From Octopus sinensis (Eukaryota), in NCBI RefSeq assembly GCF_006345805.1, contig NW_021836007.1, forward strand, positions 1 to 25,722: 25,722 nt of DNA. Direction: 5' to 3'. This document shows, in pieces, positions 2,985 through 25,722 of the stretch. A program made the position numbers and the translations under genes. A model generated the notes under the pieces. That model worked only from the letters and a program-made list of their open reading frames with translations, was not told the DNA's origin and did not search any database. Numbering within the stretch: the first letter of the stretch is position 1; each line of letters opens with the position of its first letter.

Positions 2985-4317
2985 CAGAGGTTTCCAAATG
3001 GGGAGGCGCGCCTCCCTAGGGAGGCGTTGACTCGTGTCAAGGGAGGCGCGAAAGTATTTCAGAACATTTTTTAGAAAAATATATCTATGTAAAAAACGTG
3101 ACTATATCCGATAATAAGAGTTATTAATTTAAAAATTATATTTTTTCAAAAATTTATTTAATTTATTAGACAATTAATAATTTTAACACATGAATAAATT
3201 CTTGAGTGGTTGCAAAAGAAAATTCACGATATAATAAAGATTTTGACGATGGTTCAAAAAATCAAAATGATTGGAATATAATCAATACCACTCCAAGACA
3301 AGAAAATACTTTCCATCTTACTTATTGTTAGGATTCACACGTATCTTTGTTGATTCTATGGAAAAACCCCTCTGTTTGCTTTGCCTCAAAACACTTGCAG
3401 CAGATAGTATGAGGCCATGCAAATTAAGAAGACATTTTGAAACGATGCATTCTGAACATGTCCATAAGTCTGAAGAATTTTTTAAAAGAAAATTAGAAGA
3501 GTTTGATAACCAAACGAAATCGTTAAAAAAACTTGTTTCTGTCTCTTCAAATGCTTTACTAGCATCGTACAAAGTTTCTTACAGGATTGCAAAATGCAAG
3601 AAACCGCACAATATCGGAGAAACTCTAGTTTTGCCAGCAGCTATCGATATGGTTGAAGCAATGTTTGGCGAATCCTATGCAAAACAATTACAGCAAATAC
3701 CGCTTGCTGATAACACAGTCGCTAGAGAATTGATGACATATCTGAAGATCTTTGTGATCAGTTGGTTTCTCGACTACGTAACTGTAAATTTGCTATACAA
3801 GTTGATGAGGAGCTGACATAAATAAAAATGCACATTTAATTGCATATGTCAGATATGCTGAAGAAAGTACAATAATAGAAGATCTATTATTCTGCAAACA
3901 TTTCCGGAAGGAGCACGGCCAATGAAATTTTTAATATAATTGATACTTTTTTTGAAGAAAATAACATAGAATGGATCAATTGTGTTGGACTTTGTACAGA
4001 CGGAGCACAGTCAATGTCAGGAAATAAATCTGGTCTTCAAGCTCTTGTAAAAAACAGAGCACCAGAAATTATCTGGACGCACTGCATGCTGCACAGATCA
4101 GCACTTGTCTCAAAGAATATGAGTCCAGAACTGAACGATATTTTTGCGCAAATTACAAAAGTTATAAACTACATAAAAATTATCTCATTAACTTTTTGTT
4201 TTAAAAAATTGTTTTTGATAAAATAATAATTGTATTATATTATGGAATATAAAGGGAGGCGCAAGATTGTACTTTTTCTCTAAGGGAGGCGCGTAAAAAA
4301 AAGCTTGGAAACCTCTG
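2985..4317 (+). mobile_element. hAT (Buster/Charlie-type, ZBED5/SCAND3-like) transposon, internally deleted (1333 bp)
   Basis: 13-bp TIR CAGAGGTTTCCAA at both ends, perfect 8-bp TSD TCTTAATC (2977-2984, 4318-4325) and subterminal GGGAGGCGC repeats. Confidence 0.93.
3190..4200 (+). pseudogene. Buster-type hAT transposase pseudogene (BED-like zinc finger and N-half of the catalytic domain)
   Basis: KPLCLLCLKTLAADSMRPCKLRRHFETMH, KKPHNIGETLVLPAA, CTDGAQSMSG, WTHCMLHRSAL. Several frameshifts and stops; the C-terminal half is deleted. Confidence 0.88.
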
Positions 4318-4780
4318 TCTTAATCTATAGAAATTTATGCATACTTAATTATTACTTTTGAAATGAAGTAAAAACCACCTTGTCGAGAAATGAATGTTTA
4401 TCACTATTATCGGGAGCCCTTAGAACCTTCACATCCATCAAGATTACATATTCTCGTTTGATTCTAGAAATAGTCCCTTTGCTTGTCTTGAATTTGTTTA
4501 AAACTTGTCTTTCAGACATATTTTTCGTTTTTAAAGCCTTTGCAATCTCTAATTTGTCTTTGACAGAAATTCTCTTCGGCATAACAACAGAAACACGTTA
4601 TTATTAGTTATTGTAAAATAAAATTCAAAAATTATAACTAAAAAATATATAATATATTAAATGCCCATAACGGGGTTTATCTTATAAAGAATAAACAGAA
4701 AAACTCCTATAGAAATTCAATTGCCCCAAAACCCGAGGGTGCCCCACGTCCGGGGTCGCCCCAATAAGGGGTTGCCTGTA

Positions 4781-4994: not shown

Positions 4995-7900
4995 TTAGTC
5001 GGCCAATTGGCAAAATAGAGCTGCCCCTCGCTGTATCCAGTGACTGTCCTTTTGGTCAGTGGGAAGGTTGACTGCCACAATAAAGTTAGTAGAATGACCT
5101 ATTGTTCTAGAATAAATATAAACCAGTAGTTGAGAGGACTCCTGATCTCTGCGTGGTTTTATAGAGAGGGGCTATGTAATCGTGGCTTGGAGGAGTGAAG
5201 TTCTGTGTGGGTAAGACGTGGATGACAGGCATAATGGAGGACATTTCCCTGTAGTTCATCTCGTCCATTTGACCCTGGTCACTCCATCGAAGCCTTGGGT
5301 GTAAAGTCCGTGAATGAGAGCGCCGTCTTCAATGTCTTGAATCTATGGAGTAGTGACTAAGACTAACTTGAGTATCGACTGACAATGGTTGGCCAATTTG
5401 CGAGTCCTGATCTCTTCTGCGAGGTTTGATTGGTGGATGTATTGGGGAAGAGGTTGAAACTAAAGGAAGAGTGTCAATGGGGAGTTGATATTTGCGGGAA
5501 TAGTTCTGTAACACGGCAGTGAGGAAGCCTGATAGAGTGAGTTGTGTCAACCTTGGGGGAAGAACAAGGCAGGTATCCAAAAAGATTTAGGAGTGCCATT
5601 TTTAATCCAAAAATTGAAGAATTCACATCGCATTGTAAGATCGAGAATCCAGGAGGAGAGAGAGTGAAGGGAAGGGTAAGCGACCCTCTCCCATATTGAG
5701 GGGACCTGTTTCATGAAGAATTGATAATTGCCTGGTTTTTCAATAGAGAATTGTAGCACATTTCCAAGTCTTCAGTGAGGACTTGGAATCCTTGGATTGC
5801 TCTCTGCAAGTGATTGAGGGACTTCTGCAAATGATGAGATGATCAGACCTGAATAGTTTCCAGCAGATAGGCCATTTTTTCTATTTCTTGTGATAAGAAA
5901 ATGGCGAGGGAATTGCTCTTGGTCTATTGGATGAGTGGATTGGTCAACCAATGTGTATTCTGCTAGTTTTAGGGGCAATTGTTGTTGAATTGAGTTGATT
6001 AATTCCTCTACGATCTCGTCACTAGTTTGCCCAGTTCCTTTGACCGCAATGTGTGGTTTAATGTTCCTGATGGTCTCTAGCAAGTCGGAGGATTGTGACA
6101 ACTATCGACTGAGAGTGGAAACATACTTGGAATGATATATCTGCATTTTCGTGCATCCCGAATATATTAGGTGAATCTTGCAAAGGGAGACCGTCTAGAA
6201 AATGTTTGTTCTCTTTAAAAATAGGGTCATATTGTCCATTAATGTTCGTATCTTCGAGAATTTGCTGGTTGATAAATCGTTCGAGAATAACTCCCAGACA
6301 GCGCAGATCCCATTGATCAGTGACTCTCCCCCCATAAGTAATCTAGTGATGAATACACGTGACTACCTCTCTGTTTATGTAATTGAGGGAGTGCCAGGGA
6401 ATAGTCCCGCCACTGCATAAGAACGTAGCGTTAAGAAGAGAACATTCGCGGTCAGAATCGGTGAACTCGTACTATTTGTAAAGTAACAATAATCTTACCA
6501 TTATATTCCATCCCAGTGGCCCGTATTTTTTCCGCTCTAATACGACCGCGTGAAACAGACTCAGACTATAGACCAGTTTTCTCCACGTAAGCTCTCCAAT
6601 ACCTCCTTCTTTCTCCTCGAAATATTCCTCGCCTAATTCCCGGAATGACCTCTCCACGTTTGCTCGAATTCCCTTTGGGGCCTCATTTGTCACTTTGACA
6701 CAATTCTGGAGGACTGTCACGGGAAAAAATGGGGCTGGCATGGAGGAAAGGAATAGTCGGAACGAGTCATTTACACCTTCGGGGTTTTCTTGAATATTCA
6801 GGACAATCTGCTCCAGGCGGGCCATCCACGATTTTGCCAAATGACAATTTTGCAGAAAAACCCAACTCCCATCCTTCAAGGCTGTTTCGATATACTTTTC
6901 TGCCACAGGTCCCTGTCCTTGTCCCAAAGACAAAAAGAGACACCTACCATTTTAATGAGGAGGTGGAGACCTGTCCTGCATTTCATATTCAACGCTCAGC
7001 TTTTGAATGGCCCCGAATGGGTCTGAGCCAGTGCTGAGTACCAAGAGTAGAGGAGTCGTTTTGGAAGTGTGTTGATAAACCGAGGACATGTCGAGTGGTC
7101 TGCTTTGGATGTACTCGTGTCCCAAGTTGTCTCTGATTAAGTTGGAAATCGCGTGAGTCAGCTAAATCAATCGGCTGGAAATAGAGTACTTGATCACGTC
7201 GGCAGACTTTTACGAGCAGGATTTTTTGGAAAGGTGTAACGGACTCCACATGGAATTCATCAAGTTGATTGTCTGTCAGGAATATCTGCCATCGAGAATA
7301 AAATAGACCTTTGAGTCCCCACTGGTCACATATGCACGTGTTTGGGCAAAGCAATTGGCAAGATCCTCGGAAATGATCGACTCAATGTCTCCTCGAATGA
7401 ACAAATCGAGTTCGTGGGATGTGAGGTCATTGCGGGCAAGCATTATTTCGACGCATAACAGAAAAGAAAAAACAAGTTTATGTTTCTCAAACAGTCCCCT
7501 GACTTTAAAAAATAAGAAATACCGAGAAACGTGCAAATAGGCGTCGATGGATATTGCTTGGACAAGACAGTCCAGTCTGGTGTCCCCCGACTCGACACAG
7601 TCCAGAATGGATTGGGAGAAAATCTATTGGTGGTTAATGAAAGCATTTGAAGCCTGTTTGAAGTATTGGAGGGAGAACTGGTACATTGGGTCTACTTTGG
7701 CCATGTCCGCGATGACAAAATACAGAATTGCGCCTCGCTCAGCAACACTTATGTAAACGTCCCGTGCCCGAGTAATCTCTTTTTCGGTTATTTCTGTCTG
7801 GGTGAGACGAGAAGAGATTTGGCTGAATTTGGCCTGAGTAAGAAAATTGAACAACTTTGGATTCGTTGAGAGCAGTGATGAGTTGAGTATTATCGAGGAC

Positions 7901-10900
7901 ATTTCCTTCTGAGTCGTACAAAAGGACGAGGACTCGGTCGATGATTGCCTTAAGTTGATTTCTGTCATTGTTTATTTGAAGGATCAATTCATTCCGGTCT
8001 TGTTCTAGTTTTGGCTTCTCGAGTTGGACGACATGACTATCATTTATCATTGATCTCTTGCCTCAGCAGTTGATCTTGGAGTCCCCCCAGTGTGACTGTA
8101 AAATTGATTACTGTCACTCGTGTGAATAAGTTGGGCTGGTAAACGGGATTGTTCAATTTTGTGGTCATGTAAAGTCGGAAATGAGGGTCGTACTCCACAT
8201 CTCGGTCCCCTAGTGTGATCACCCCGTCCTATCAATTAAAGTCATCGCTCACTCTCTTCTCGAGGACTGAGTAAAGAAGAGGGTCCACTGACTCTCCCAC
8301 ATCCTCGATCAACAAAGGCACCCCAATTCGAATTGCGTTCTCTAATGTCCTCGCAAAATGCTTGTCCGTCATTTTAATAACTTTAAGGTCATTGGCAGCC
8401 TCCATGCTTCTTATCCACGTGTTGGCCTGTTCTTAAAACAAAGAAGGAGACCTGTCCTTGTGGGTCAATCATTAGTGGCCATCGTTTCCCTTTGGTGGCG
8501 AGGAGTGCGTTCTGAATGGAGACTTGATTGTTGGGAAGTTTGTTGGACGTCCAGTGGCGCACTTGATAGGGTGAGGCAAATATTTGTATTATGTCATAGT
8601 CCTCTGATATCGGTATTCCCTCTCTACGCGCATACTTGACCCATTTCAATATTAGTCTTTCTCGGTAACCAACACTGAATGCACCCACATACGTCACCCA
8701 AGCAGAACACACCATTACATTCCCAACGAGGTCCTCAATCTTTTTTTCCAGTGTCTAAAATTTGACGTTCTCTACCAAACTTTTATTTCGGCCTCCCAGA
8801 TTTCTTTCTCGTCGCCCAGAGCCTCCATTAGCTTGGAAGCGCGTCTCAGTCGACCGGTCGTGGTTGAAATCTGTTTTTCCAAATTTCTCTTTTCAAGGAC
8901 ACTGGCCTCATAGGCATTTTGTAATTCGCTGATTTGTTGTTGGACGTTGCTGAGTTGGGTCTGCTTGGTGTGGAGAACCGTCATGACTTGCTTCAAGTCT
9001 TTTTCGGCCACAGCAAGTCTTGTGTGTTTCAACTAATGTACCTTTCCTTTTTGGGCCGGACAGTTTTGTTTACTTGGGCAAACAAATAAATAGCCCTAAC
9101 CCACATGCATAAAGATTTACAGGCCTAAACCATAAAAAGTGACTTTACTTTTGACACTTTTTCAATCACTTGAGGAGTAAAGTTCTCATTCTCGATGTAT
9201 TTCTTGAGTTTCCGAAGCACTGAATCGTTTATGTTCTCTTTATCGTAGTCGTATAGTTTTCTGATCAAGTTAGTGTCCGACAGCAGTTGCTTTGCGGACG
9301 CCCAGTCGGTTCTAAATCAAAGATTCGAAAAGACTTTAAGTGAAAGAGGACACACACAGCTTCCATGACAGTCTGCACTAATTCGGGTGGGGTTTTGAAT
9401 ACTCTGATTTCTGCAATGTCACTTTTATCGAGTGCGTCGAGGGACTATTTCTCATCATAACAAATTACTTTAATGGCAGCCTCCAGTTCAGGCAGAGCCT
9501 CCTTCAGGTCACGTTGAGCATCCTCCGCTATGGCCTTGGTTTCTTCCGCCTTTACCTTCACCACAGCCTCGTCCTCTAGCACCAGTTTCCGTGTCTAAGC
9601 GTTACTTTCAGATCCTCACAATATCTGCTTTGTCCTGGTCTTCCGACAATTTTTCCATTAACTTTTCAGTTTCCTTTGACTTTTCTTTAAGCACAGGCTC
9701 CAGTTGATGGAGTTGTTTTTCCATTGAAATGACGATTTGGTTAGTTTCTATCAGTTTGGCCAACCCGTTTTTAATCTTTTGATGTTCTCGAGAGAGGTCC
9801 CTTGAAATAATGAAATGCAATTACTCTTTGGTCGTGCTAAGCATAGATGTAAACAAGTTGAGTAATTCGATATAACTGACTGGATTGAGGCAATAATGTC
9901 TTCCCATTTCTTCCTCAAATTTGACTGACATTTTGTGGACACTGCGATGCACTCGAATGCAGCAATCGCACAATTTTCCCTAGACTGTGCTTATTAACAC
10001 AACCATCAAATTTTCGTCTTTCAATTCTATTTTACTGATAAATGAGTGAGCCACTGAGTGCAGTCCCTCATCTTTCCATTCTTCAAACCAGTCAATAATG
10101 CAGCAGTTCACTAAAGATGGAAACATCCTGTAAACAGTCCGAAATTCAGACGCACTCAGTGTAATGACAACGTGCAAATTCCGCCTGAGTAGTGACTATC
10201 ACATTACTACCGCACACGATCGATGAACGACTCATAGACCGCCTCACGACTGTCAGTCAATCCCTCAGATTGACAGCTCATTATAATTTGTTCCACATCC
10301 TCGTCCTCAAATAAGTCGGGCACATGGCCGGAATTCAGAATGTCGTTTATTTCTTGAAGAAAGTCTTTAATTTGATTATCTGCGAGCAGAAAGACGACAT
10401 TCCGGTCATCAATTCCCGCTATTTTGTAAAGTTTTTTGACGTCTTCTCTGAAGGCTGTGGAGTCGTATTTGGGAGTGACTTTGATCTCAAAGCACTCATA
10501 TTCGTAAATTTGTGCGGCCAGTCTGAAATGACTGATCAGTTTGACCTGGTGAAACATTTCTTGCCCGTTCCCCCAACTCCCACGAGGAGTCCATTCCCCC
10601 GTTCTTGGCGAATTATGCGGGCGATTCGTGAAACATGCTGAATAGCGTCTTCAAACAAGATCAAGTCACTTTGATACTGACAGTAGAGAGAACTCTCGTT
10701 AACCTCAGTGAGCATTCTTCTCAGCTTGTTTTTGTCCATTTCCTCGTACTTTCCCCTGTTCATCAAATCACCGTAAATTGGAGGGTTGGTCATGAAAGAC
10801 TACAAATGAATGAGCCAAACACTTCGTAAGTGGAAGAGGTCTGTCGCAAAATAGTTTGAAACAAATTTTGGTCAGTTTGATCGATGAGGCGGTCTTGAAA

Positions 10901-13900
10901 TGCTCTGGTGATTTCATGATAGAAAAGTTTGTAAAGTGATTGGTCGTCGAAGATGGTCTTGACTTGCATGATTCCTGAAACACGTGCAAACTCTTACCTT
11001 GGAAACATCTTGACAAGTCTCTCAGATTGAACGAGTAGTGACACTTGGCAGGGGTCGGGAGCAATTCGTTCTGCATTCTCTGGTAAATTTCGACGGAGGC
11101 CAAAATCACCGAGTCGACTGCCAGTCTGACTTGGTGGGGAAATTCCATAACTTTCAAAATGTTCTAAAGTATACTCATCCAGACCACCTGGAAAATATGT
11201 TTGAGGTTGTGATCTGAGGGAGGGGGGACATTAAGGATGGAAAAATGCCGAGTGAAGCGATTGGTCATGCACCCTTGAGGTCCACAGGCGGCCATCAATG
11301 TCACGTCCTAGAAATATTACAATCCTTCAACTGTGATCCATCGCCAGCTCAGTGATTGCCGATCATATAGTCCTCTCATGTCCTGCAACTGCCTCAACAA
11401 TTCGATTGGAGGCTGGCACCCATAAAGGTCGGGTTTAGGCATGTTTACGTCATCAAGGAAGACCACCATATGCTTCCCTTTCGAAGGCCCTGGAAAATAT
11501 GCTCAATTAGTCACCTAAGATGTTGCGACGGTGTTTTTCAAGTTTAGCTTCAATCATTTGCTGAATGCTGGCACTGCTCGTTTGCGCCGAAAAATTGAGG
11601 GAGAGAGGCAAGACATTTGACTGAGTCCTCAATTGGTGCAATGTGTTCCGTGCAATTACAGACTGGGACATCCATGACTTGGTACCTTGCCAACTCCACT
11701 TTTCCCCACAAACATGACGGGCATTTGGACTGTGATCAACTTATCAGCCAAAAAGCCGTATTTGACAGTATCACTGTTTGGGACAATCATATCGAAGAAC
11801 CCACTGCCCGAATGGAAGGGGGGAATGGCTCGTTCCCAATGCTCCATTTTTCTTGTCTCCGTGTCCACGTAGTAACTCCAGAGATCACCTTGGCCGGGAA
11901 TCTGTTGATTGACAGGAACTACCCTGACGTCGCCGTTCTCTTCAAAGAGTTGTTTAATGAACGTATCAAACACATCCCAGTCAGACTCGACTAAATTCCC
12001 TCCGATAGCCCACAAGTAGCAAAAAACGAAAATTGTGGAAATAACGGTTCGAGAAGGCTCTTTGAGGGGGAAGAGAATAGACTCGATGAGTTTGCAGAGA
12101 GTAGTAACCTTGGCCAAATCACACTACAAATTCTCGACACGTGCAACCTGCCGAATGACCTGGGTGGTCTTGGTGGACACAAAATGAAGACCCTCGTCTA
12201 CATATTTCGTAAATAGTTCGAGAATGTGGTTGAAAGTGGTCTCACTTAGTTTGTTCTTGTGCGACTTCAGCCATCTTTGCACCCACGGAAGCCATCCGAG
12301 ATCTTGTGAATCAACGTAGAGCATTCCACATCTATTTGTCCAAAAAAATTGTCTACCGACTGACAGTTGCAGGCGAGGCGACGGACAGGTCCTCGACTTC
12401 GAAAAGCATACGAATGTTTGGAGTGAGTTTAATACGCTCACTGTTGGGCAGACAAAGCATTTTATTGTCGTCAAGTACAGTGTTCATGTTCTCGATCCAC
12501 GAAGCATCCACAGGTCCGTCGCAGATGACCCAGTGGGGGTTGTTGGCCTGTATTTAATGGCAATGACTTACAGAAACGGCTTTTCTTATTGTCAGGGCCA
12601 TCAGTCCGTCTTTCCATTCCAAAGTCTGTTTGTTCACGCCGCCGTAGAGTTCTTGCATTGAAATGGCTTTCGGGTTGATCACACAAGTCTCCACTGATCC
12701 CACGTGTCCCTCAACTTGTGCCAACGTCTACTCAATGTGACATGTCATTCACTTGGTACAACGTCGTCTTGCCACCACCGGTGGGTCCCACCAGCATTAC
12801 TCCGTGCCTTACCAACATTGTCTCGTACAATTGGACAATTTGCTTGGACTGTGCCTTCACAACACTCAAGTTGTTTTTCTGACAGATATTCCCAATTTCC
12901 TGACTGAACTCTTCGTAGTCGTTTTCACCAACAGTGATTCCTGGAAACAAGTCAAGGACAATGTCCTGGGGGTTAGTTAAACATTCCACCAGAAACAAAT
13001 CCGCGTCTCGTCTCAGAAATTTGGGGAGATTGGCCCCTCGGATTGCCCTGATCAAAACGATGCTTTCATCCTCGTCTGGATTTTGTTGTTTTTGCGAACC
13101 GGCCATGACCAAGACTGATTTGAGGGCTCTCATGCCGAAATCGTAGTGATCCTGCTGTGAGAGTTGCTCCGAACAGAGTTTGTAAAGTTGGACAACTTTG
13201 TTGGAAAGGTATTTAGAGGTTTGGAAGCCTTGCGAGTAGAGAATGACCTCTGCAATGAGCTCTAATATAATAAAGTAATTTGGAAGACTGTAATCGGGGA
13301 CCATCATAGAGAAGGGACGGAAAAGTGCTTTCAAGTTGTCAGGCAATTCTGTACGACCAGCATAGGAAGGATTCATGGTTATAAAAGTGGCACAAGTTGG
13401 GACAAGTTGGACATTTTTTCCTTCAAAGTTGAATGTGGTTAGTTTGGCTGCTTTTGCGTTGCGTATTGTGATGAGTTGTTGGGCAATGACTGAAAGGACT
13501 TGAATATCAATTCGATTGAACTCGTCGAAACAGCACCACGAGCCAGACTGGACAAGACCAGTGAAAAACCGTCCCATGGTCTACATAAATTGATGAATTC
13601 AACTTGATAGTCCAATCCGTCCGAACAATTGAACACAACACAATGCTTTCCCAGTGTCTTGGCCAGGTCTTTGGTGGTTTCGGTCTTTCCGGTGCCAGCA
13701 GGACCAGCTGGTGCCCCGCCAAGGTCGAACTGGAGTGCGCCCATCAAACAAATGTAACAACGGTCCTGAATACAGAAGAGAACATACAGTAAGGGGGGTG
13801 ATCACCAGTCGGGAGGACGCTCCCACATATTCGTAGCCGTATTTATATTCGGAAATAGACATTCGCACAACACAGTCCTCGGCCTCCCAGTAATACCGCA

Positions 13901-16900
13901 GCTGTTTTACCCATGCAAAATCTCCAATGTCAGTGACCTATTTTTACTTGAATATGTTTTACTCTGTCTGCAACAAGTTGACTAACTATGTCTCGGCAGT
14001 GGACATTGATTGTTATAAGTGTGCAGAGAATTTGCTGAAAGAGCTCTGAGTTGGGCTGTCGCACTTGATCAGCCAAATAATTCAATCGGGCTACGCTCGT
14101 TTGCTCAAAATCAGACATTTGTGACCCATTGGATAATATTTGAGAGATGGTCTCACACCAGCATATTTGGGACACTGTCAAGACCACCTGCGAGGGCCAC
14201 GTCTTGACCCACTCCTCAAAGGGTTTTTTGCTGAGGAGTGCCTTCTTGGTGTGATTACGCACACTAATGAGCATGGCCTCTTCTACATTGGACAGCCAAT
14301 CTTCCACGTTTCCACGAGCACGGAGACCCTGTTTGGTCAATTTATGTGACACGAACTTTTCTTAACTTGACCTTTTCGCCTTCGGGAGATATCATGGCAA
14401 GTATGTTAGGAGTGCTTGGTTCGAATTCGAGAGACTTTATTGCGTCGAAACATTTATTCAGATGTGGCTGCACTGCCATGGGGTTTCGAGTCTGAGCCAA
14501 AATGTCCAAAAGTTGATCGTTGGAAAGAAAATAGAACCGCGGAAAAGCCTCTCTTTTTGTTTCCAAGTACTTTTCGAGACATTTGAGAATTTGTTGAAGC
14601 ATTTGATTGTTGTTGGTGAAAGTATCAACCAGTCCTGCTTGTTCGAGGGAATATGGTACCTGCCTGAGTGCATGCTCGAATTGCCAGAGGCACACGATGA
14701 GTCTTCCTCATTATTTCCTTGAACGACTTGTCCACTTTGGAAAAGAGTTTGGACTCCTCGGGAAGCTGTCGTTGTATCTCAGGGGCAGAAAAGATGGATT
14801 CCAAGTACATCCAAGACTTTTGGCATTCGAGCCACTCGTTCTGATCTCCATAATCACTCCACTTACCAGCGTGGCCTCAAAAACTTGGAATTGTTTTTTT
14901 AGTTCTTCTACTCTCGAACTGATCGGGCCCACATTTCTCGAGGAAAGGATACTGGAGACACCCACAATCGAATCATCCAAGAGTTGCTCAATGTCCTCAG
15001 TTCCTCCAAGCACATAAACGTCTCTTTGCTCTTTGTAGACAGGGACGTGGAACTCGGTATGCTTCCACGAGTCCTCGATCTACGATTTTGGGAGTTGAAT
15101 ACTTTTTTGAACATTGACTCGAGTGCGGCTTCGGATGAAGCCTTGGTGGATATTTCCTTAATTTGCTGGTCGTATTCAAAGGCATTGCATTGCTCTAGAC
15201 TGCTGATAGTCATGGATTCAATGTTTATAATTTCATTGATCACGGCCCAGTGCCGTGCTTTCAAGGCCGGGTTTTTCAGGTTCATCAAAACAGGAATTTT
15301 GTACTTAATATAATTCACCTGCTAATACATAAAACTTCATACCCGTTCTTTCAACTGGCTGGTCATTAAATTCGGGGACAGTCCTTTGTCCAGTTTTTGC
15401 ACAATCTTCCAATACTTACCCGTGATCGAGTCAAGTTGGTCTAAGTCGCACTGCTTTAGGTCGACCTACCACTGTTTATCATCAACAAACGTCAATCCAT
15501 GACTGCACCAGGGTTTCCCATTCGTCTATCGAATTCCACAGAATCGTCTTGAGCGAAATTTCCTCTTGTACGTCTTCCAACTCCTCATATGTGGTGACCT
15601 CCAGTTGGAAACGCAGTTGGTGACTCCTGTACAATTCAGTCTTTTCTTTCAGTTCCTCCACACGTGCACCGTGGATTCCCAAACAACTCAGGATCTCTCC
15701 TTATTTCCCGCCGGGTCAAGATTGGATGGATTCTGGAATTAGATATCGACCTACTTGGACACTTTTCTTGATTTCCTTGATTTCTTTGAATAATTCACAT
15801 GTGTCCTTGTCCAGTGAGAGACACAGTTTCCGAATCGTGTCTTGTCGCTCAGCGGACACTTTATCGATGCTGTTACGCACATTATTTATTGTGGGAGTCA
15901 CAGTCTGAGTCGCTCTTACTCACAAACCTGGTAGATCACGTCGTCTTCAGGGGGCGAGGGGACACTGAACTTGGAAATGAGTTCGTACATGTCCCTGATG
16001 ATGTCAATTTCACTTTCCACAAAATCAATCTACGCTTCAAAATGGTCTACAAACTCGTTCTTGTATCTCGTCCAAGAAGAGCAGACTTTGCACAATTTCA
16101 GGTGTATCGCTCGGTCGCATATCCAGACGGAATTGGGCGTCATTGAGACCACTGAGCACTTTGTCGACCATCTGGCGTGCCTGGTTGGGAAGAACGTCGT
16201 GGATGTACTATACGTGCTTTAAGGGTCGTACTTGAATGCACCGATTGGGAGAGGGACATAACTTTTGTTTAAATTCACGAGCATCCACAAGAAGCAAACC
16301 GATAGCACGTTTCTCGACAATACTGATGGCCATTCGGCTTTCAATGTGATGCTTTTCCAATGAAGAAGCCAAGAACTGAACATGTTTGTTAAGAAACGAG
16401 TCAATTCCGAGGGCCTCGTCCATGTTGTAGAACTCAAGGTAACTGGAAAAAGTTTGCGCGTATTTATTGGCTGCTGAGAAGGCCTTTCCAATGCAGTCCT
16501 GCAATACGAGCACGGAAATACCTGTACATCTTTTCTGACTGCTTGCAAGTGTGTATCGTCTTCGAAGATAGCCTTCAAGTTTGGTCCCGTCCCACTCGTC
16601 CTCTCCTCAAATTTATTGTTGATGAAAGGTCTTTTGTTGGTGTGAAGAATTACTTTGTGAATGGGTGAAAATGAGGGTCAGGTAAGAGATTTTCTACTGC
16701 AATCATCGTTTTTGTAAAGTTGTTTCCTATTTCTTCCAATGCAGTCTCAAACGTCTCCAGATTGGGCGAGAATTCAATTTGTCCGTTTTCGAGCAGCATT
16801 TCCACCAGGAAAGAGGGACAGGACTCAATTACTTGGTCAAATGGTTTCTAGCATTGTCATTCCAAGGTACCTTTGCTTGCCTTATATTGACTTGGATTCC

Positions 16901-18355
16901 TGCCTCTTTCAGGCTGAAATATTCTTCCAAGTCCCCACTCACGTCTTGCTTAGTCCGAGTAAAACTGGAAATGATATTGTCGGAAGGAGTGAGGTTTATT
17001 TGGTTGGATAAATAATTTTTGATGGTCTCGATCGAGCGGACCGTGAGAGTGTGAAGTGCATTTGTGATCAAATAGTCCGACAAACAGACGAAACTACATT
17101 CTATTAGTTCACCTAACCATGTCAGTCGCCTGCATTCCTCTCTCTTGGCAGCCTGTTCCGTATAACTTAAATTCTCACAGGCTTCTGCGAATTCAGCCAT
17201 TTCCTCTTCCTCAGAGTCACCTACTTGTGTTATCATTGCGAGGACTGTCGTAGATTTCACGGAATGGATAGTCGTCGGGGTTGAAACCCTTCTCGAGCAG
17301 GGCAGTTCGACAGGCACATTTGATCACGTCAATCACAATGCTTCGGAATTCCTTTAGTTTCTCCTGCATTTGGGCAGTCGACGAAGCGTGGTCTTGCACA
17401 AACTTGTCCAGACTCACTGTTTGGTCGTATGCCAAGTTAGTCAACGTCAGATCACAGATTCGGTAGCTCATTCCTCGAAGACTCAAAAGGGCGGACCGGA
17501 GAGGCTTGATATAAACACTGAAATCTACCGGATTGACCAAGAAAAGAGAGTTTTCTATTTGTTTTTTAGCACTTTTAATCTTTTCGCAGCGAATAGTCCA
17601 ACGCCAGACCATGAATGCCTTCCATCGCTTAAATTGTTGAAAGGTAGGGATCTGATGGACTCGTTTTAATGTACTTTGTGGATAGCACGGAAATGTTTAT
17701 ATTCTTGTTCAAACACATGAAGGTGAGTAAAGTCAACTTCGTCGCCCTGTCTTGTTCGAGTGAAGCCTACTCCACTCATTGTGCAGTAATCCGTCTTTGA
17801 AATCTCCTGATAGTTAGTCACCCTAAAATCGACTGATTCCACTCACTTGAGGTTATAATAGTGATACTCCACACTCGACTTGCTTACTGCTGGGACCAAA
17901 TAGAAGAACCCCACCCACGGGTTCTCACGAATTACCCCAATCGTCTCCAGCAAATTTCTATTTCCCCAGTATTCGTCCATAAACTTCAGTTGTGTCTCGA
18001 TCTTGTTTCGAGGCAAACAAGCCAGTTCTTTCGGTAGCGACACCTCGTACTTGGCCAACACAGCCTACAGTAATCATATTGCTTTACCTTTCGCAATTGT
18101 ATGTTGTCCAGAGATACCTTTTTCACTTTCGCCTTAGTTTTCACCTCCACTTGTCTTTTCTCCCGAATGTAAGACGGTTCTTTCTGCACTCTTCCCAAGA
18201 ATGGCTAGACTTTTTATTTTTTACTCCAACCAGTGGCTCTAGCTGGGGCAGTTTGGGGCATCCCCCTCTCGTTGTCCCACGTACTTTCACCCACGGCAGT
18301 TCGCATGAATCGTTTTTTTCTAATTGTCACTAATCTTAGAAAGCTTACTTCTCAT
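4995..18355 (-). CDS. DNAH6: Axonemal inner-arm dynein heavy chain 6 orthologue, about 3916 aa, 67 exons, 66 introns of 21-30 nt
   Basis: The spliced translation follows vertebrate DNAH6 as I recall it, from N-terminal EPLP..PSYI and [19 protein letters not shown] through AAA1 ([19 protein letters not shown]), AAA2 (GPTGGGKT), AAA3 (GKSGVGKS), AAA4 (GVGGTGK), stalk/[17 protein letters not shown] and SLGQGQGP, to C-terminal [25 protein letters not shown] (4995-4997). Internal check: 13361 nt minus 1615 nt of introns plus 5 restored bases = 11751 = 3917 codons. The start ATG at 18355 is the least certain point (an alternative at 18387 needs one more 20-nt intron). Confidence 0.95.
5706..5731 (-). 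other. GC-AG intron (26 nt)
   Basis: CAG|GCAATTATCAATTCTTCATGAAACAG|GTC; splicing restores NQ-VPSIW (DNAH6 NQVPxLW). Confidence 0.85.
7625..7654 (-). other. GC-AG intron (30 nt)
   Basis: CAG|GCTTCAAATGCTTTCATTAACCACCAATAG|ATT; contains an in-frame TAG; splicing restores YFKQ-IFSQSI. Confidence 0.75.
8037..8061 (-). other. GC-AG intron (25 nt)
   Basis: AG|GCAAGAGATCAATGATAAATGATAG|T; splicing restores [12 protein letters not shown]. Confidence 0.85.
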
Positions 18356-18411: not shown

Positions 18412-19739
18412 CAGGGTTTCCTAAATTTTTTGTTTCGTGACACCCTTTTTTTCACCAAGACCACGCTAAAAACCGAACAAACGTCACGTGATCAACCAGG
18501 GACCTCATCCTCGCTCGGTGATCCTTTCACGAGCCCACACAAGATCGCACTGGGCGGCAGGCTGTTTTTGGCGGAGCATTGGCTGACGGGCCCAGGTTCA
18601 GCTTGATGAGGTCTTCCAGAGAAGCTGGAACCGGCCGTTGGCTATCATGTGACCAACGATCGGTTAATCTGAGGGCCCTTTGTTGGGCCTCCTCGATTCG
18701 CCTCCTGTTGGACCACGATAGCCGCGAACCCCATGATCCGCAAGCGTAGGCAATACAAGGTTCGAAGTACTTGCGGTAGATATTCGGCAGTACCGGGTGC
18801 GACCCGTTTTTCCATATTCCGGATAGAGTTCGTAGTATGTTCAATTTTTGTTCGCATTTGCGAAGGAGGTTGTCCGCATGTGGGGAGAAACAGAGGTGCA
18901 TGTCGAGGGTTACCCCTAGGACCGTCTGACTCCTGCAGAAGGGTACGGATATATTATTCAGCTTTAAGTCGACTGACGTCCTTCCCAATCTTTAAAGAGC
19001 ATCTTTAAAGAGCATGGAAAATGCAGATTCACATAAAATGGTAAGAGAGCATAGACAGACTGGTCTGACGATGATGGATACTGATTTTGTATTTACTCAA
19101 AAAATGAACAATGCTTCAATTCTAAATCTAAAAATTGTTTAACTTTTTTACCAATTCTTTCAATCCGTGATCTGTTGACATTTCAAAAATTTGTTGATAT
19201 TCAGCAGAAGAAATATTTTCCAATTTATTGATCATTATGAAAGGATTCTTAATCTAATCATTATTCACTTTTTTGCCTGGAAAATATTTTTTTAATTCAC
19301 TTTTAATTGCTCCAAATGATCTACTAGTTCACAAATGAAAGTTTAGAAGAAACAAGATAAGCGTTACACAATATTTTGTGACAAAACATACATTCGGCTT
19401 TCGATAAAGCATATTTATCACAGCACTTTGCAAATCCATATAAAGGATATTCGTCCAGCTATTTTCGTTTCTTTATCTTTAATTTTTATACAGACAATGA
19501 TCGTCTTTTGAGTTATTTCAATAAAACGTTTTGTTATTCATTAACTCGAATATAATAAATCTACAAAAAAATACTAAAAAATAACGATAACACTATAGAT
19601 GTCGACACGGAACGTTATTTGTTGAAAATCTATTTATTTGGTCTAACTAAAATAAATTTACTTAAATAATAAAATAATTTTTCGAATTTTTCGCGTCACC
19701 CCTAGTACTAGCCCGCGGTATCCACTTTGAGACACGCCG
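18412..19739 (-). mobile_element. Buster-type hAT element (1328 bp) with a nested LINE fragment
   Basis: Perfect 8-bp TSD ATTTAGAG (18404-18411, 19740-19747). Imperfect TIRs CAGGGTTTCCTAAA / CGGCGTGTCTCAAA (9/14). Minus-strand remnant KKRK*LDEYPLYGF..ECMFCHKILCN..SSKL (~19340-19475) resembles the N-terminal BED-like region of ZBED8/Buster3-type transposases. Confidence 0.8.
18470..18990 (-). pseudogene. 5'-truncated non-LTR retrotransposon fragment (C-terminal RT/thumb region)
   Basis: LGVTLDMHLCFSPHA..KLNILRTLSG..YRKYFEPCIAYACGSW..NRRRIEEAQQRALR is the usual LINE post-RT signature. Visibly more GC-rich than the surrounding DNA. Boundaries approximate. Confidence 0.8.
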
Positions 19740-22236: not shown

Positions 22237-22422
22237 ATTTAATCACAGACGCTAACCTAATTATTTTAATGTTAATTTAATCAAACAAATTTTATTATTA
22301 AAAAACTAAAAAAAATTCTTTTAATTAAAAATTTTTTACTTGGAATCCGAGGGAAAATGAACAAAGCTGAAACTTAAAAGAATTAAAGAAAGGGAGCCAC
22401 CTGGAGTGGAGCATGCGACATA

Positions 22423-24062
22423 CAGTGGGGCAAAAAAGTCATGGCACCTTTGCAAATTTTGACTAAATTTAACAATTCTTTGCAAAAAAATTATTAAATA
22501 CATTACTTTAAAAAATAAATTAGTAATATAGAACTTTTTAGATAAATTATTAAAAAAACTATCTTAAAGGGAATTATTAATAGTGCACTAATTAACGATT
22601 TATTTTTAAAAGTCAATTTTTTGAGAGAAAAAAGTAATGGCACGAAATCCAATTAATATTTAGTTGCATTCCCTTTTGCTAGCAGAACTGCTTCCAATCG
22701 TTTTTTTAAGAAAAAATTAGTTTTTGACATTCTACTTTAGAAATATTTTTCTATTCTTCGTAGCAAATTGTTTTTAATTCCTGGATATTTTTTGGTTTTC
22801 TTAAGCCAACTTTTATTTTTAATATTTTCCATAAGTTTTCGATGGGATTCAGGTCTGGCGATTGACTTGGCCATTCCAAAACATTTATTTTGTTTTTTTC
22901 TAACCATTTAACGGTTACTTTTGACTTGTGCTTAGGATCGTTGTCATGCTGGAATGTCCAATGTTGTGTCAAATTTAAGTTCGCGACCGAAGGTAAAAGA
23001 CATTTTTCCAAAATTTCGCAATATTTAAGAGAATTCATCATTCCATCAATTACAAATAGTTCACCAACACCTGTTGATGAAAAACAACCTTACAACATGA
23101 TACTACCTCCCCCGTGCTTTACGGTAGGTACGGTGCATTTTGGGATATACGCCTGATTTGATTTGCCCCAAATTGAAAGCGTGTAGTTCAGTCCGAAAAG
23201 TTGTATTTTGATTCGTCCGACCACAAAATATTGTTTATGAATTCATTTTCTTTGTTCAAAAGATTTTTTGCATATTGGATTCACGCTGAAAGGTGTATTT
23301 TCTTTAATAACGGAACTCGACGGGGCCTTCGCTTATTGATACCTTCTTTGCGTAGTGTAGAAGTGATTGTACGAAGGGACACTGACGTTCCTGTGATTTT
23401 TAAATTATCGGCCAATTCTTTTCGAGTTATTTTTGGGTTTGAAGTAACTAATTTTTTCATTAATGAAGAAGAACGCAGAGATATCTTTTTTGGAGCACCC
23501 GATCTTGGTTTATTAATAACAGTTCCGCGTTGCTTCCATCGAGTAATAATATTTCGAACAGTACTTTTTGGTAATATCAACAATTTAGAAATCTCTCCAT
23601 AACTTTTACCGTTTTGCTGGGCAGTTACAACTCGTTGTTTTAGGTCTAAAGAATGCTCTTTCCTCATCGACGAGATAATTTTAATAAAAGGCGAAAAATA
23701 AAAGTATATTTATACTAATCGGAATCTACTAATCAATTATATTAATAGAACTAAGAATCAATTATTTCAAAGAAAAAACAAGGCACCAAAAGATAATCAT
23801 TTGTATTTTATTGTCAAAAAAATCCATATTTTTTGATAGTGTCATCACTTTTTTACACATCAAATTTGACGTTTTTCTAAATATGAAGCAAAAACAATTA
23901 TATTTATTTGAAATTCATGAATATAATTAGCACGAAATGGGTTCAAAAGAATGCAAGATTTTATTGTGTAGCATGATGAACTAAATCGAAAAAGTTATCA
24001 TTGTAAAAATATATTGAATTACAAAAAAATGATAGGTGTGCCATGACTTATTTGCTCCACTG
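22423..24062 (-). mobile_element. Full-length Tc1 (DD34E) transposon (1640 bp)
   Basis: TA TSD (22421-22422, 24063-24064); 25-bp TIRs CAGTGG(G/A)GCAAA(A/T)AAGTCATGGCAC with 2 mismatches. Confidence 0.93.
22653..23667 (-). pseudogene. Tc1 transposase pseudogene
   Basis: MRKEHSLDLK..PRSGAPKK; WSDE; HDNDPKH(34 aa)..PSQSPDLNPIE. Three in-frame stops (23281, ~23100, ~22751) and a frameshift near 23190. Confidence 0.92.
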
Positions 24063-24445
24063 TATCGTTAATAGATACCGAATCCTTGTTCATAGTGTCT
24101 GTAATCAAATTTTAGTTTATATTAATTGTTAATATTTTTGAAAAATCTAAATGCTTCATACACCCCTCGACAAAAAATTTGGTTGTTTAATCTTTCCTGC
24201 TTTTTTTCATTTAAAAACGAATAAATTCATACTTTAAGATCCTTTAGATCTTCTAAAATAATATTTATTTTGTATTTATAATTAAAATAGATTTAAATTT
24301 TAATATTGCAAGAAATTTAAAGCATGTCGGCAATTAGGTTAGTGACAAAAATTGGTTATAAAATTTAAACCGTCAAATTATGCTAGTATTTAGAGATTGA
24401 TCTTAATAAAAAAATATTTTTAGATATAATACTCTCGATTCGTTT

Positions 24446-25465
24446 ATGAAAGGGAAAATAATTGCGCTATACGACTTAAATATGTCATATATTAAAATTT
24501 CTAAAGAAACCGGTGTTCCATATTCAACAGTCGTAAATTTTATCAAGAAATACAATAAAACTGGATCATATGACCGCCAACATGGTTCTGGAAGACTATC
24601 AATTTTGAATAATGTGCAAATTAATCATTTGGTACGCACATCAGAGGAAAATTCATCTTTAACTGCTTCTGAACTCTCTAATGAAATAGAAAAGTTTTCT
24701 GGAACACGTGTCTCGTCTCGAACCATAATACGAAATTTAAATAAAAATTGAATTTTCGGAAGAATTGCAAAGAAAAAACCACTTCTAACAAAAAAACACA
24801 TGGTTTCCAGATTCGAGATCGTCCAAAAATTTCTTCAAATTTCAGACCATGATTTTAGATCAATAATCTTTTCTGATGAATGTATTTTTGAATTATTACC
24901 GATCCAAAAAAGAAAAATTGTGTATAGAAAAAAATTTGAAATGAATAAATTCGAAAATATTACTCCAACTGTCAAATTTGGAAAAGGTAAATTATGATGT
25001 AATAAAAAATTAGGGAAAGTCATGGGGTGGGGTTGTTTTTCCTATCATGGGGTAGGCGATTTGGTATTTATAGACAAAACGCTTAATTCTGCAAAATATC
25101 AATCTATTTTGACCAATAATTTGCCATTTTCTGTACAAAAAATGGGGATTGTTGACTATATTTTTCAACAAGACAACGCTCCCTGCCATACATCAAAAAT
25201 GATTATTCAATATTTTCGCGAAAAAAATATTAAAAAATTAGAATGGCCTTCGCAATCTCCGGATTTAAATCCGATAGAGCATTTGTGGGCTTATATGAAG
25301 GTTCAAATTAGGCAAAGAAAAAATGAGAACATTCAGGCACTGAAGGAAAATCTATTAGATATTTGGAATTCTATTCCATCAAAAACACTTGAAAAATTAG
25401 TTGAGTCAATGAAAAAAAGGTGTTGGGAGATCTATTCGGCAAAAGGAGGTTATTCTACATATTAA
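24446..25465 (+). pseudogene. Near-intact Tc1 transposase with one nonsense codon and a 27-nt intron
   Basis: The three ORF-track pieces share one frame. TGA at 24749-24751 replaces an expected Gly; the second 'stop' lies inside a GT-AG intron at 24987-25013. FSDE, QDNAPCH(34 aa)..SPDLNPIE, and terminal KGGYSTY are present. Confidence 0.9.
24987..25013 (+). other. 27-nt spliceosomal intron inside a Tc1 transposase
   Basis: AAAG|GTAAATTATGATGTAATAAAAAATTAG|GGAAA; removal gives TVKFGKGKVMGWGCF, matching the Tc1 consensus TVKxGGGxVMVWGCF with no extra residues. Confidence 0.8.
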
Positions 25466-25722
25466 TCTAACAATAACCAAATTTTATGCCAATGAAAGTC
25501 GTTGTTTTTTCCAAATTTCTTAGACAAAATTTCAAAATTTAAATAATTAAATTAATTTTTATCAATTTTATCAGATTTTAAAATATATCTGAAGAAAAAA
25601 TTAAATCATTCTTTGTATGAATGAAGTAAGTTGAAGATTCACCAATATTTATGTCGAGGGGTGTAATTTATGAAAATGTCAAAACAAGAATCTTCTGAAG
25701 GAGCAAGCCTGTCTGCACAGTT

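Follow-up and report, generated by a model that had tools for sequence, protein, structure and literature searches.

A candidate 27-nucleotide spliceosomal intron in the catalytic core of a Tc1-like transposase gene from a host with miniature introns

Results

A Tc1-like transposon with an intron-like segment in its transposase gene

The DNA analysed here, referred to below as the window, is a stretch of 25,722 nucleotides (nt) comprising positions 1 to 25,722 of the forward strand of contig NW_021836007.1, from the Octopus sinensis RefSeq assembly GCF_006345805.1. Near its right-hand end lies a Tc1-like transposon, the focal element, whose transposase reading frame is broken by a 27-nt segment that has the appearance of a very small spliceosomal intron (Table 1). 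The window also contains a DNAH6-type axonemal dynein heavy chain gene, at approximately 5000-18000 on the minus strand, which provides a set of host introns with which the segment can be compared.

The focal element is a member of the Tc1/mariner superfamily, in which it falls into the Tc1-like DD34E group. Its terminal inverted repeats (TIRs) read TACACCCCTCGACA... and ...TGTCGAGGGGTGTA, with a TA at both outer ends, and its transposase scores above the curated Pfam cut-offs for both HTH_Tnp_Tc3_2 (46.3 bits, cut-off 31.5) and DDE_3 (48.4 bits, cut-off 28.6). The conserved frame runs from the ATG at 24446 to the TAA at 25463-25465 and amounts to 330 codons once the 27 nt are removed. The upstream exon includes the helix-turn-helix DNA-binding region and the first catalytic aspartate (D144, codon at 24875), and the downstream exon supplies the remaining catalytic residues, D234 (codon at 25172) and E269 (codon at 25277). 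In the spliced protein these three residues form a DD34E triad, and the corresponding alignment columns are invariant or nearly so. The spacing between D144 and D234 is 90 residues in the spliced form as compared to 99 in the unspliced form. A protein search returned 5977 homologues at E <= 1e-5, of which the named ones are Tc1/Tcb transposases.

Table 1. Coordinates of the focal element, its candidate and hypothetical introns, and host introns used for comparison (positions in the window).
Feature	Position	Strand	Basis or remark
Whole Tc1-like element	24159..25665	+	1507 bp, counting the terminal TA on both sides; TA target duplication and CACCCCTCGACA... inverted termini; Pfam domains
Left TIR, TACACCCCTCGACAAAAAATTTGGT	24159..24183	+	25 nt, 88% complementary to the right arm
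Right TIR, ACCAATATTTATGTCGAGGGGTGTA	25641..25665	+	Inverted-repeat pairing with the left arm
Transposase exon 5' of the candidate intron	24446..24986	+	Codons 1-180 and the first base of codon 181; translation, Pfam, alignment
In-frame TGA, codon 102	24749..24751	+	Sole nonsense codon outside the candidate intron; aligned column G, N, E or K in relatives
Candidate 27-nt phase-1 spliceosomal intron, AAG/GTAAAT...AATTAG/GG	24987..25013	+	Translation, alignment, splice-context score
Transposase exon 3' of the candidate intron	25014..25465	+	Remaining catalytic core to the TAA stop
Hypothetical first exon, ATG TCG GCA ATT AG (MSAI + R), weak	24324..24337	+	No other ATG-to-GT/AG join reaches the conserved frame
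Hypothetical 86-nt first intron, GTTAGT...TTTTTAG, weak	24338..24423	+	Splice context 9.9 bits, about the host median
Host 24-nt intron	12966..12989	-	Seen in the alignment to solved DNAH6
Host comparator, 27-nt GT-AG intron, GTCTTCCAAATTACTTTATTATATTAG	13262..13288	-	Dynein AAA1 region; 9-residue insertion relative to 9fqr_Xz
Host comparator, 23-nt GT-AG intron, GTTGAATTCATCAATTTATGTAG	13581..13603	-	Between ...SDGLDYQ and TMGRFF...; colinear with DNAH6

The segment itself reads GTAAATTATGATGTAATAAAAAATTAG. It begins with GT, ends with AG, has 15% G+C and is situated between the first and second catalytic aspartates of the transposase. Left in place, it carries the frame into a TGA at 24995-24997, such that the unspliced reading is ...VKFGKGKL*CNKKLGKVMGWGCF.... 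When it is cut out exactly, the translation becomes ...VKFGKGKVMGWGCF... (also given as ...TPTVKFGKGKVMGWGCFSYHG), with a GGG codon created across the junction GGAAAAG/GGAAAG. A GT-AG, AT-rich, 27-nt segment with an in-frame TGA is exactly what the initial annotation had described at this position, and each of these features was confirmed. The only further GT, at 24999, can be paired with the same AG; we rejected this pair, which would span only 15 nt downstream of the TGA and leave that codon in place, and no other GT-AG pair takes out the TGA.

The segment is an insertion relative to all relatives found

We aligned the focal transposase by MAFFT with 14 relatives picked from the 5977 homologues. 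The nine residues contributed by the segment are missing in all 14, and the rest of the region aligns without gaps, bearing out the earlier proposal that its precise removal restores the Tc1 consensus. The same picture holds at the DNA level. In three relatives (L001, L002 and L003) the DNA from PTVKFG to WGC is an uninterrupted 45 nt, which is the length of the spliced focal sequence, and nothing was found at the intron position in any of the five loci read as DNA (these three along with L014 and L016). L003, for example, reads ...AAATTTGGAAAAGCAAAAATAATG... as compared to ...AAATTTGGAAAAG/GGAAAGTCATG... in the focal element. Absence from the closest relatives, which the initial annotation had suggested as a check, therefore extends to all 14 aligned sequences, the best homologues from the protein search being only 45-48% identical. 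As judged by these alignments, the 27 nt is an insertion relative to every relative found. Matches of L014, L016 and L019 that start at residue 171, near the intron site, were considered as a possible sign of an intron and were attributed instead to frameshifts in decayed copies.

The nearest of these transposase relatives (45-48%) come from an NCBI assembly of 26% G+C, GCA_041192925.1 (L002 and L003; the closest are P0005 and P0044), where they form long intron-less open reading frames (ORFs). Further near relatives are from microsporidia (Dictyocoela) and metagenomes (P0009 and P0011 listed), and not from spiralian animals; horizontal transfer of the family into its host is therefore possible.

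The sequences on either side of the segment, GGAAAAG and GGAAAG, had been described as resembling a short duplication. This reading did not hold up: the spliced product retains the two of them, and only together do they encode G-K-G-K, for which relatives have, residue by residue, G-G-G-K or G-K-A-K. A target-site or repair duplication was likewise rejected: neither repeat is extra, the region having 15 codons in the focal element and 15 in L001-L003, and L003 carries TTTGGAAAAGCAAAA uninterrupted at the homologous site. By this comparison the flanks are native coding sequence that happens to supply an AAG/G proto-splice site. Tandem duplication of the adjacent exon was also discarded as a source of the segment, as a comparison by eye with the 27 nt immediately upstream gave only 9 matches of 27.

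The copy is dead but young

The element had been called nearly intact apart from the segment and, indeed, TIRs, TA ends, a single nonsense codon and a frame free of frameshifts were all found. The copy in the window is nonetheless dead, because the TGA at codon 102 bars production of transposase. A second tiny intron hiding this TGA was considered and rejected, as the vicinity lacks a GT and the residues at this point align with those of relatives. The frame thus contains 1 stop in 330 codons, as compared to a mean of 27.5 (minimum 10) in shuffles of the coding sequence, and the other two frames carry 24 and 26 stops. Since about 6% of the possible single substitutions would make a stop, one stop corresponds to roughly 1-2% divergence from an intact parent, and this rough figure suggests that the copy is young. 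In a copy this little decayed, several independent coincidences would have to come together for a random 27-bp insertion to mimic a host intron exactly.

Searches for other copies of the family covered several collections. The assemblies index had no record identical to the downstream ORF of 147 residues, and no protein more than 48% identical was present in the collections searched. Similarly, neither metagenome_contigs nor genome_contigs contained the TIR pattern TACACCCCTCGACAWAAAWWTTGG, the best partial match in a related-loci search of metagenomes was 48%, and blastn and tblastn of the element against the window recovered only the element itself and one different Tc1.

Introns of 22-27 nt are the rule in the neighbouring host gene

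The dynein gene is split into many short frame pieces and has about 44% G+C as compared to 27-32% in its flanks. It contains about 50 GT-AG introns, of which 39 are 22-27 nt long (two of 22 nt, 13 of 23 nt, nine of 24 nt, ten of 25 nt, three of 26 nt and two of 27 nt). These were predicted by a codon-usage Viterbi model that permitted introns of 15-60 nt and returned 48 introns, 37 of them of 22-27 nt; only this size class was used, and some Viterbi exons elsewhere are visibly mis-framed. After splicing, a stretch of 702 residues is colinear with the solved DNAH6 chain 9fqr_Xz (E = 6e-286). Two introns in the AAA1 module, of 27 and 24 nt, are multiples of three and stop-free and read as 9 and 8 extra residues, and it is on account of this length and the missing stop that the Viterbi model overlooked them. 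Intron finders based on ORFs or stops pass over such introns, and it took the comparison with solved DNAH6 to reveal these two.

Searching proteins with the dynein exon gave a best match of 67%, with all matches being fragments, and the best named dynein matches were spiralian. Dicyemids are ciliated, while myxozoans are not known to have cilia. Among animals, introns of less than 30 nt are found only in Dicyema and in myxobolid myxozoans (PMC13644364). The median intron of Dicyema sp. is 27 nt, and about a third of its predicted introns are at least 30 nt long (PMC6543705). Furthermore, the genome of D. japonicum has 36.7% G+C and 49% repeats (PMC6736024), and the G+C content and repeat load of the window are similar. 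The 22-27-nt introns, the ciliary dynein, the spiralian dynein matches and this overall composition together argue that the host of the window is most likely a dicyemid or a dicyemid-like animal.

The segment resembles host introns more closely than chance would provide

At 27 nt the segment falls inside the 22-27-nt range of the dynein introns, two of which have this very length, so that its earlier description as a host-sized miniature stands. To compare its boundaries with those of the host we used a position weight matrix built from the 39 host introns, covering donor positions -3 to +6 and acceptor positions -6 to +2. The splice context of the segment scored 12.6 bits, above 95% of the host introns (leave-one-out; host median 9.5 bits), a value reached by 1 in 123 random GT-AG pairs of 22-27 nt from AT-rich non-coding DNA of the window. 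When real AT-rich 27-mers from the window were placed at the site, exact restoration by GT-AG removal occurred in 51 of 8000 trials (0.64%). Under a looser criterion, which accepted any GT-AG removal of 20-30 nt that came within 2 codons of the restored length and introduced no new stop, 22% of random inserts passed; the informative part is therefore the exactness of restoration rather than spliceability as such. Tiny introns with a length divisible by three usually hold in-frame stops, so that their retention is caught by nonsense-mediated decay (Jaillon et al. 2008, as summarised in PMC3464196), and the segment, which combines such a length with an in-frame stop, fits that pattern. In aggregate, these comparisons support the view that in length, boundaries, exon context and composition the segment is like a host miniature intron.

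Discussion

Intron or insertion

We consider it probable (roughly 65%) that the segment is a genuine U2-type GT-AG phase-1 spliceosomal intron, carried by a Tc1-like DD34E lineage in a host, likely a dicyemid, whose introns measure 22-27 nt. If so, it would be spliced, would have been present in the active parent of this copy, and would have arisen after the lineage split from the relatives found, whose transposases are only 45-48% identical. It is simpler to suppose that the segment was already there in the parent element, where splicing made it tolerable, than to invoke multiple coincidences within a young copy.

Several points weigh on the other side. Tc1/mariner transposase genes are usually without introns (PMC4120734), which lowers the prior for any such proposal. 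The loose criterion is passed by more than a fifth of random inserts, the 15% G+C of the segment lies below the 20-48% of the dynein introns, though it is like that of its own AT-rich element, and 27 nt, the length of 2 of the 39 introns, is the upper edge of the size range in the single host gene covered. Moreover, the one copy examined is a pseudogene and lends no support to sharing of the segment among copies or to its splicing, and the closest relatives, at 45-48% identity, do not fix the time or the host of the gain.

A rival reading is a private 27-bp insertion, for instance by filler DNA from double-strand-break repair or by replication slippage, into a copy that was already dead, in which case GT and AG would be coincidental and never used in splicing. 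We regard this as unlikely. The TGA at codon 102 does mark the copy as a pseudogene, no second copy was found that might show the segment to be shared, the segment shares its AT-richness and low complexity with the non-coding DNA around it, and 22% of random inserts would look spliceable in the loose sense. What a private insertion accounts for poorly is the precision of the fit: random AT-rich 27-mers give exact restoration in only 0.64% of cases, the splice context is better than that of 95% of host introns and 99% of random GT-AG pairs, the length lies within the narrow host range, and there is no other indel and only one stop, so that several coincidences would be needed at once.

It is decidedly improbable, in our estimate, that the intron is real but was not gained de novo here, being instead older in the Tc1 lineage or imported horizontally from a tiny-intron organism and then kept or trimmed. 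Relatives of only 45-48% identity leave a long unsampled branch for the gain. The work of Ogino et al. 2010, as cited in PMC6543705, describes the introns of host genes as ancestral and shrunken within a conserved exon/intron structure, and Tc1/mariner elements of Paramecium, a tiny-intron host, have predicted introns (PMC3464196). The position is empty, however, in the 14 aligned relatives as well as in the DNA of L001-L003, L014 and L016, and the splice context suits the host consensus very well.

Dicyemids are reported to eliminate DNA in the course of their development. It is very improbable even so that the segment is removed at the DNA level (TA-bounded, Paramecium-type), or that it is what a different mobile element left behind as a footprint or remnant, with a duplication of the target site. 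In favour of such a reading, a TA lies near both ends of the segment (24988-24989 and 25011-25012), the flanks GGAAAAG and GGAAAG are alike, and many circular contigs are reported in the Dicyema sp. assembly (PMC6543705). Against it, excision from TA to TA would take out 23 nt and shift the frame, where the loss of an internal eliminated sequence of Paramecium should leave one TA and restore the ORF; both flanking near-repeats are needed for G-K-G-K, with one uninterrupted in L003; and neither inverted termini on the segment nor a repeat of it elsewhere in the window were found.

Returning to the spliceosomal intron, a fuller history can be suggested, in which a Tc1 element colonised a dicyemid after the introns of its host had shrunk, gained a new intron of 22-27 nt at AAG/G in its catalytic core, and spread that intron with the family. 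We offer this sequence of events tentatively and think it doubtful in its entirety.

How splicing would affect transposase production

With the segment as an intron, the element would be transcribed from its 5' region and the host spliceosome would join ...GGAAAAG to GGAAAG..., forming the codon GGG and restoring the glycine-rich strand FGKGKVMGWGCF between the first and second catalytic aspartates. Intact copies would then yield a DD34E transposase of 330 residues. An unspliced message would end three codons into the intron, after 183 residues that comprise only the DNA-binding region and the first aspartate, and might be either a target for nonsense-mediated decay or a source of truncated DNA-binding protein. 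Such a product could in principle compete for the inverted repeats, in the style of a P-element repressor.

Relation to known systems

An intron in a Tc1/mariner transposase gene, with a transposase that needs host splicing, is already known in kind from Minos, Tc1, Tc3 and Anchois. For example, Minos, a Tc1-like element of Drosophila hydei, has a two-exon transposase gene with a 60-bp intron (PMC2874221). It resembles the focal element in that a Tc1/mariner transposase gene carries one short host-type intron whose removal is needed for full-length transposase; however, 60 bp is a normal short size in Drosophila and both splicing and activity have been demonstrated for Minos, whereas the focal case is one of sequence only, in a host with introns below 30 nt. 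The transposase genes of Tc1 and Tc3 in C. elegans, the founders of the Tc1 family, are also said to contain one small host-typical intron each. That of Tc1 is reportedly near the N-terminus, while the candidate described here is in the catalytic core, beside the GxGxxMxWGC strand. Introns have also been predicted in the annotation of three Paramecium elements, Sardine, Thon and Anchois, and the DDE ORF of Anchois may contain one of them (PMC3464196). As Tc1/mariner elements in a tiny-intron host (introns of about 25 nt) they are the closest analogue of a host-sized miniature intron in a catalytic ORF, although Paramecium is a ciliate that uses a variant genetic code and eliminates the elements at the DNA level, and their introns are only predicted, while the focal host is an animal.

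With respect to how such an intron might work, a parallel exists in the P element of Drosophila, where retention of the third intron (IVS3) gives a truncated DNA-binding protein in place of transposase, so that host splicing governs mobility, and germline-specific regulation has been demonstrated. The 183-residue read-through product of the focal element would have the same general architecture. The likeness is one of working and not of membership, the P element belonging to another superfamily, and regulated splicing of the focal element is conjecture, as are the ideas put forward in the initial annotation that the intron provides germline or tissue control or a barrier to transfer. Recent intron gains in Daphnia are reportedly flanked by short direct repeats. 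The candidate is comparable to these in being a short new intron at an AAG/G proto-splice site in conserved coding sequence, but it differs with regard to the repeats, as its flanks are native coding sequence and are both retained after splicing.

If it is an intron, the segment would, to our knowledge, have no precedent in a dicyemid-like host and no shorter counterpart among the introns proposed for animal transposons. Introns are uncommon in Tc1/mariner transposase genes (PMC4120734). If the proposal is true, the supply of transposase, and with it mobility, would depend on efficient splicing of a miniature intron, retention giving the truncated DNA-binding product. A young family would moreover present many near-identical copies of one miniature intron, with the intron-less ancestral state preserved in relatives, and could be used for dating the gain of an intron, for defining the minimal animal splicing signals of 22-27-nt introns and for studying mobility that is throttled by splicing. 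It would, in short, constitute a datable multi-copy natural experiment on intron birth and on the smallest spliceosomal substrates of animals. With one dead copy in hand, the candidate is a lead and not a result.

Additional features of the window

The initial annotation had further proposed, with much less certainty, a first exon encoding MSAIR that would be joined to the conserved frame by removal of an 86-nt intron. When all ATG-to-GT/AG joins into the frame were enumerated this was the one solution (Table 1), but 69% of shuffled versions of the 5' region also provide such a join, and the proposal therefore fares no better than chance. At 86 nt, the intron would also not fall within the 22-27-nt peak found for the dynein gene. 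The only point in its favour is that the sequence just upstream of Met 24446 (24410-24445) encodes YNTLDSF, which resembles the N-termini of relatives (..QLSDF..), with no in-frame ATG before it. The join is possible but unsupported, and loss of the original start codon explains YNTLDSF equally well.

A second, unrelated and much more decayed Tc1 element is located on the minus strand at approximately 22420-24066. It is Sleeping-Beauty-like (KHGGGSIML*GCF), contains several stops and one frameshift, and has ends that read TACAGTGGGGCAAAAAAGTCATGGCACC and TACAGTGGAGCAAATAAGTCATGGCACA, one of which comes to within about 93 bp of the focal element on its left side. No insertion is present in it at the site homologous to the 27-nt segment.

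On the plus strand, at approximately 3271-4500, there is what looks like a hAT-like pseudogene (...IPLADNTVAR / RIDDISEDL... / ...CVGLCTDGAQSMSG...) that is broken by frameshifts of 1-2 nt and stops and not by tiny introns. The pseudogene resembles domesticated hAT proteins of the GTF2IRD2/ZBED type, and its first ORF had no significant Pfam match. The minus strand also carries an ORF of 153 residues (...LGVTLDMHLCFSPHADNLL...QRALRLT..., 18527-18988), just upstream of the dynein gene and within a block of 47% G+C. It gave no Pfam match at E <= 0.01 and presumably resembles the C-terminal part of a non-LTR retrotransposon reverse transcriptase.

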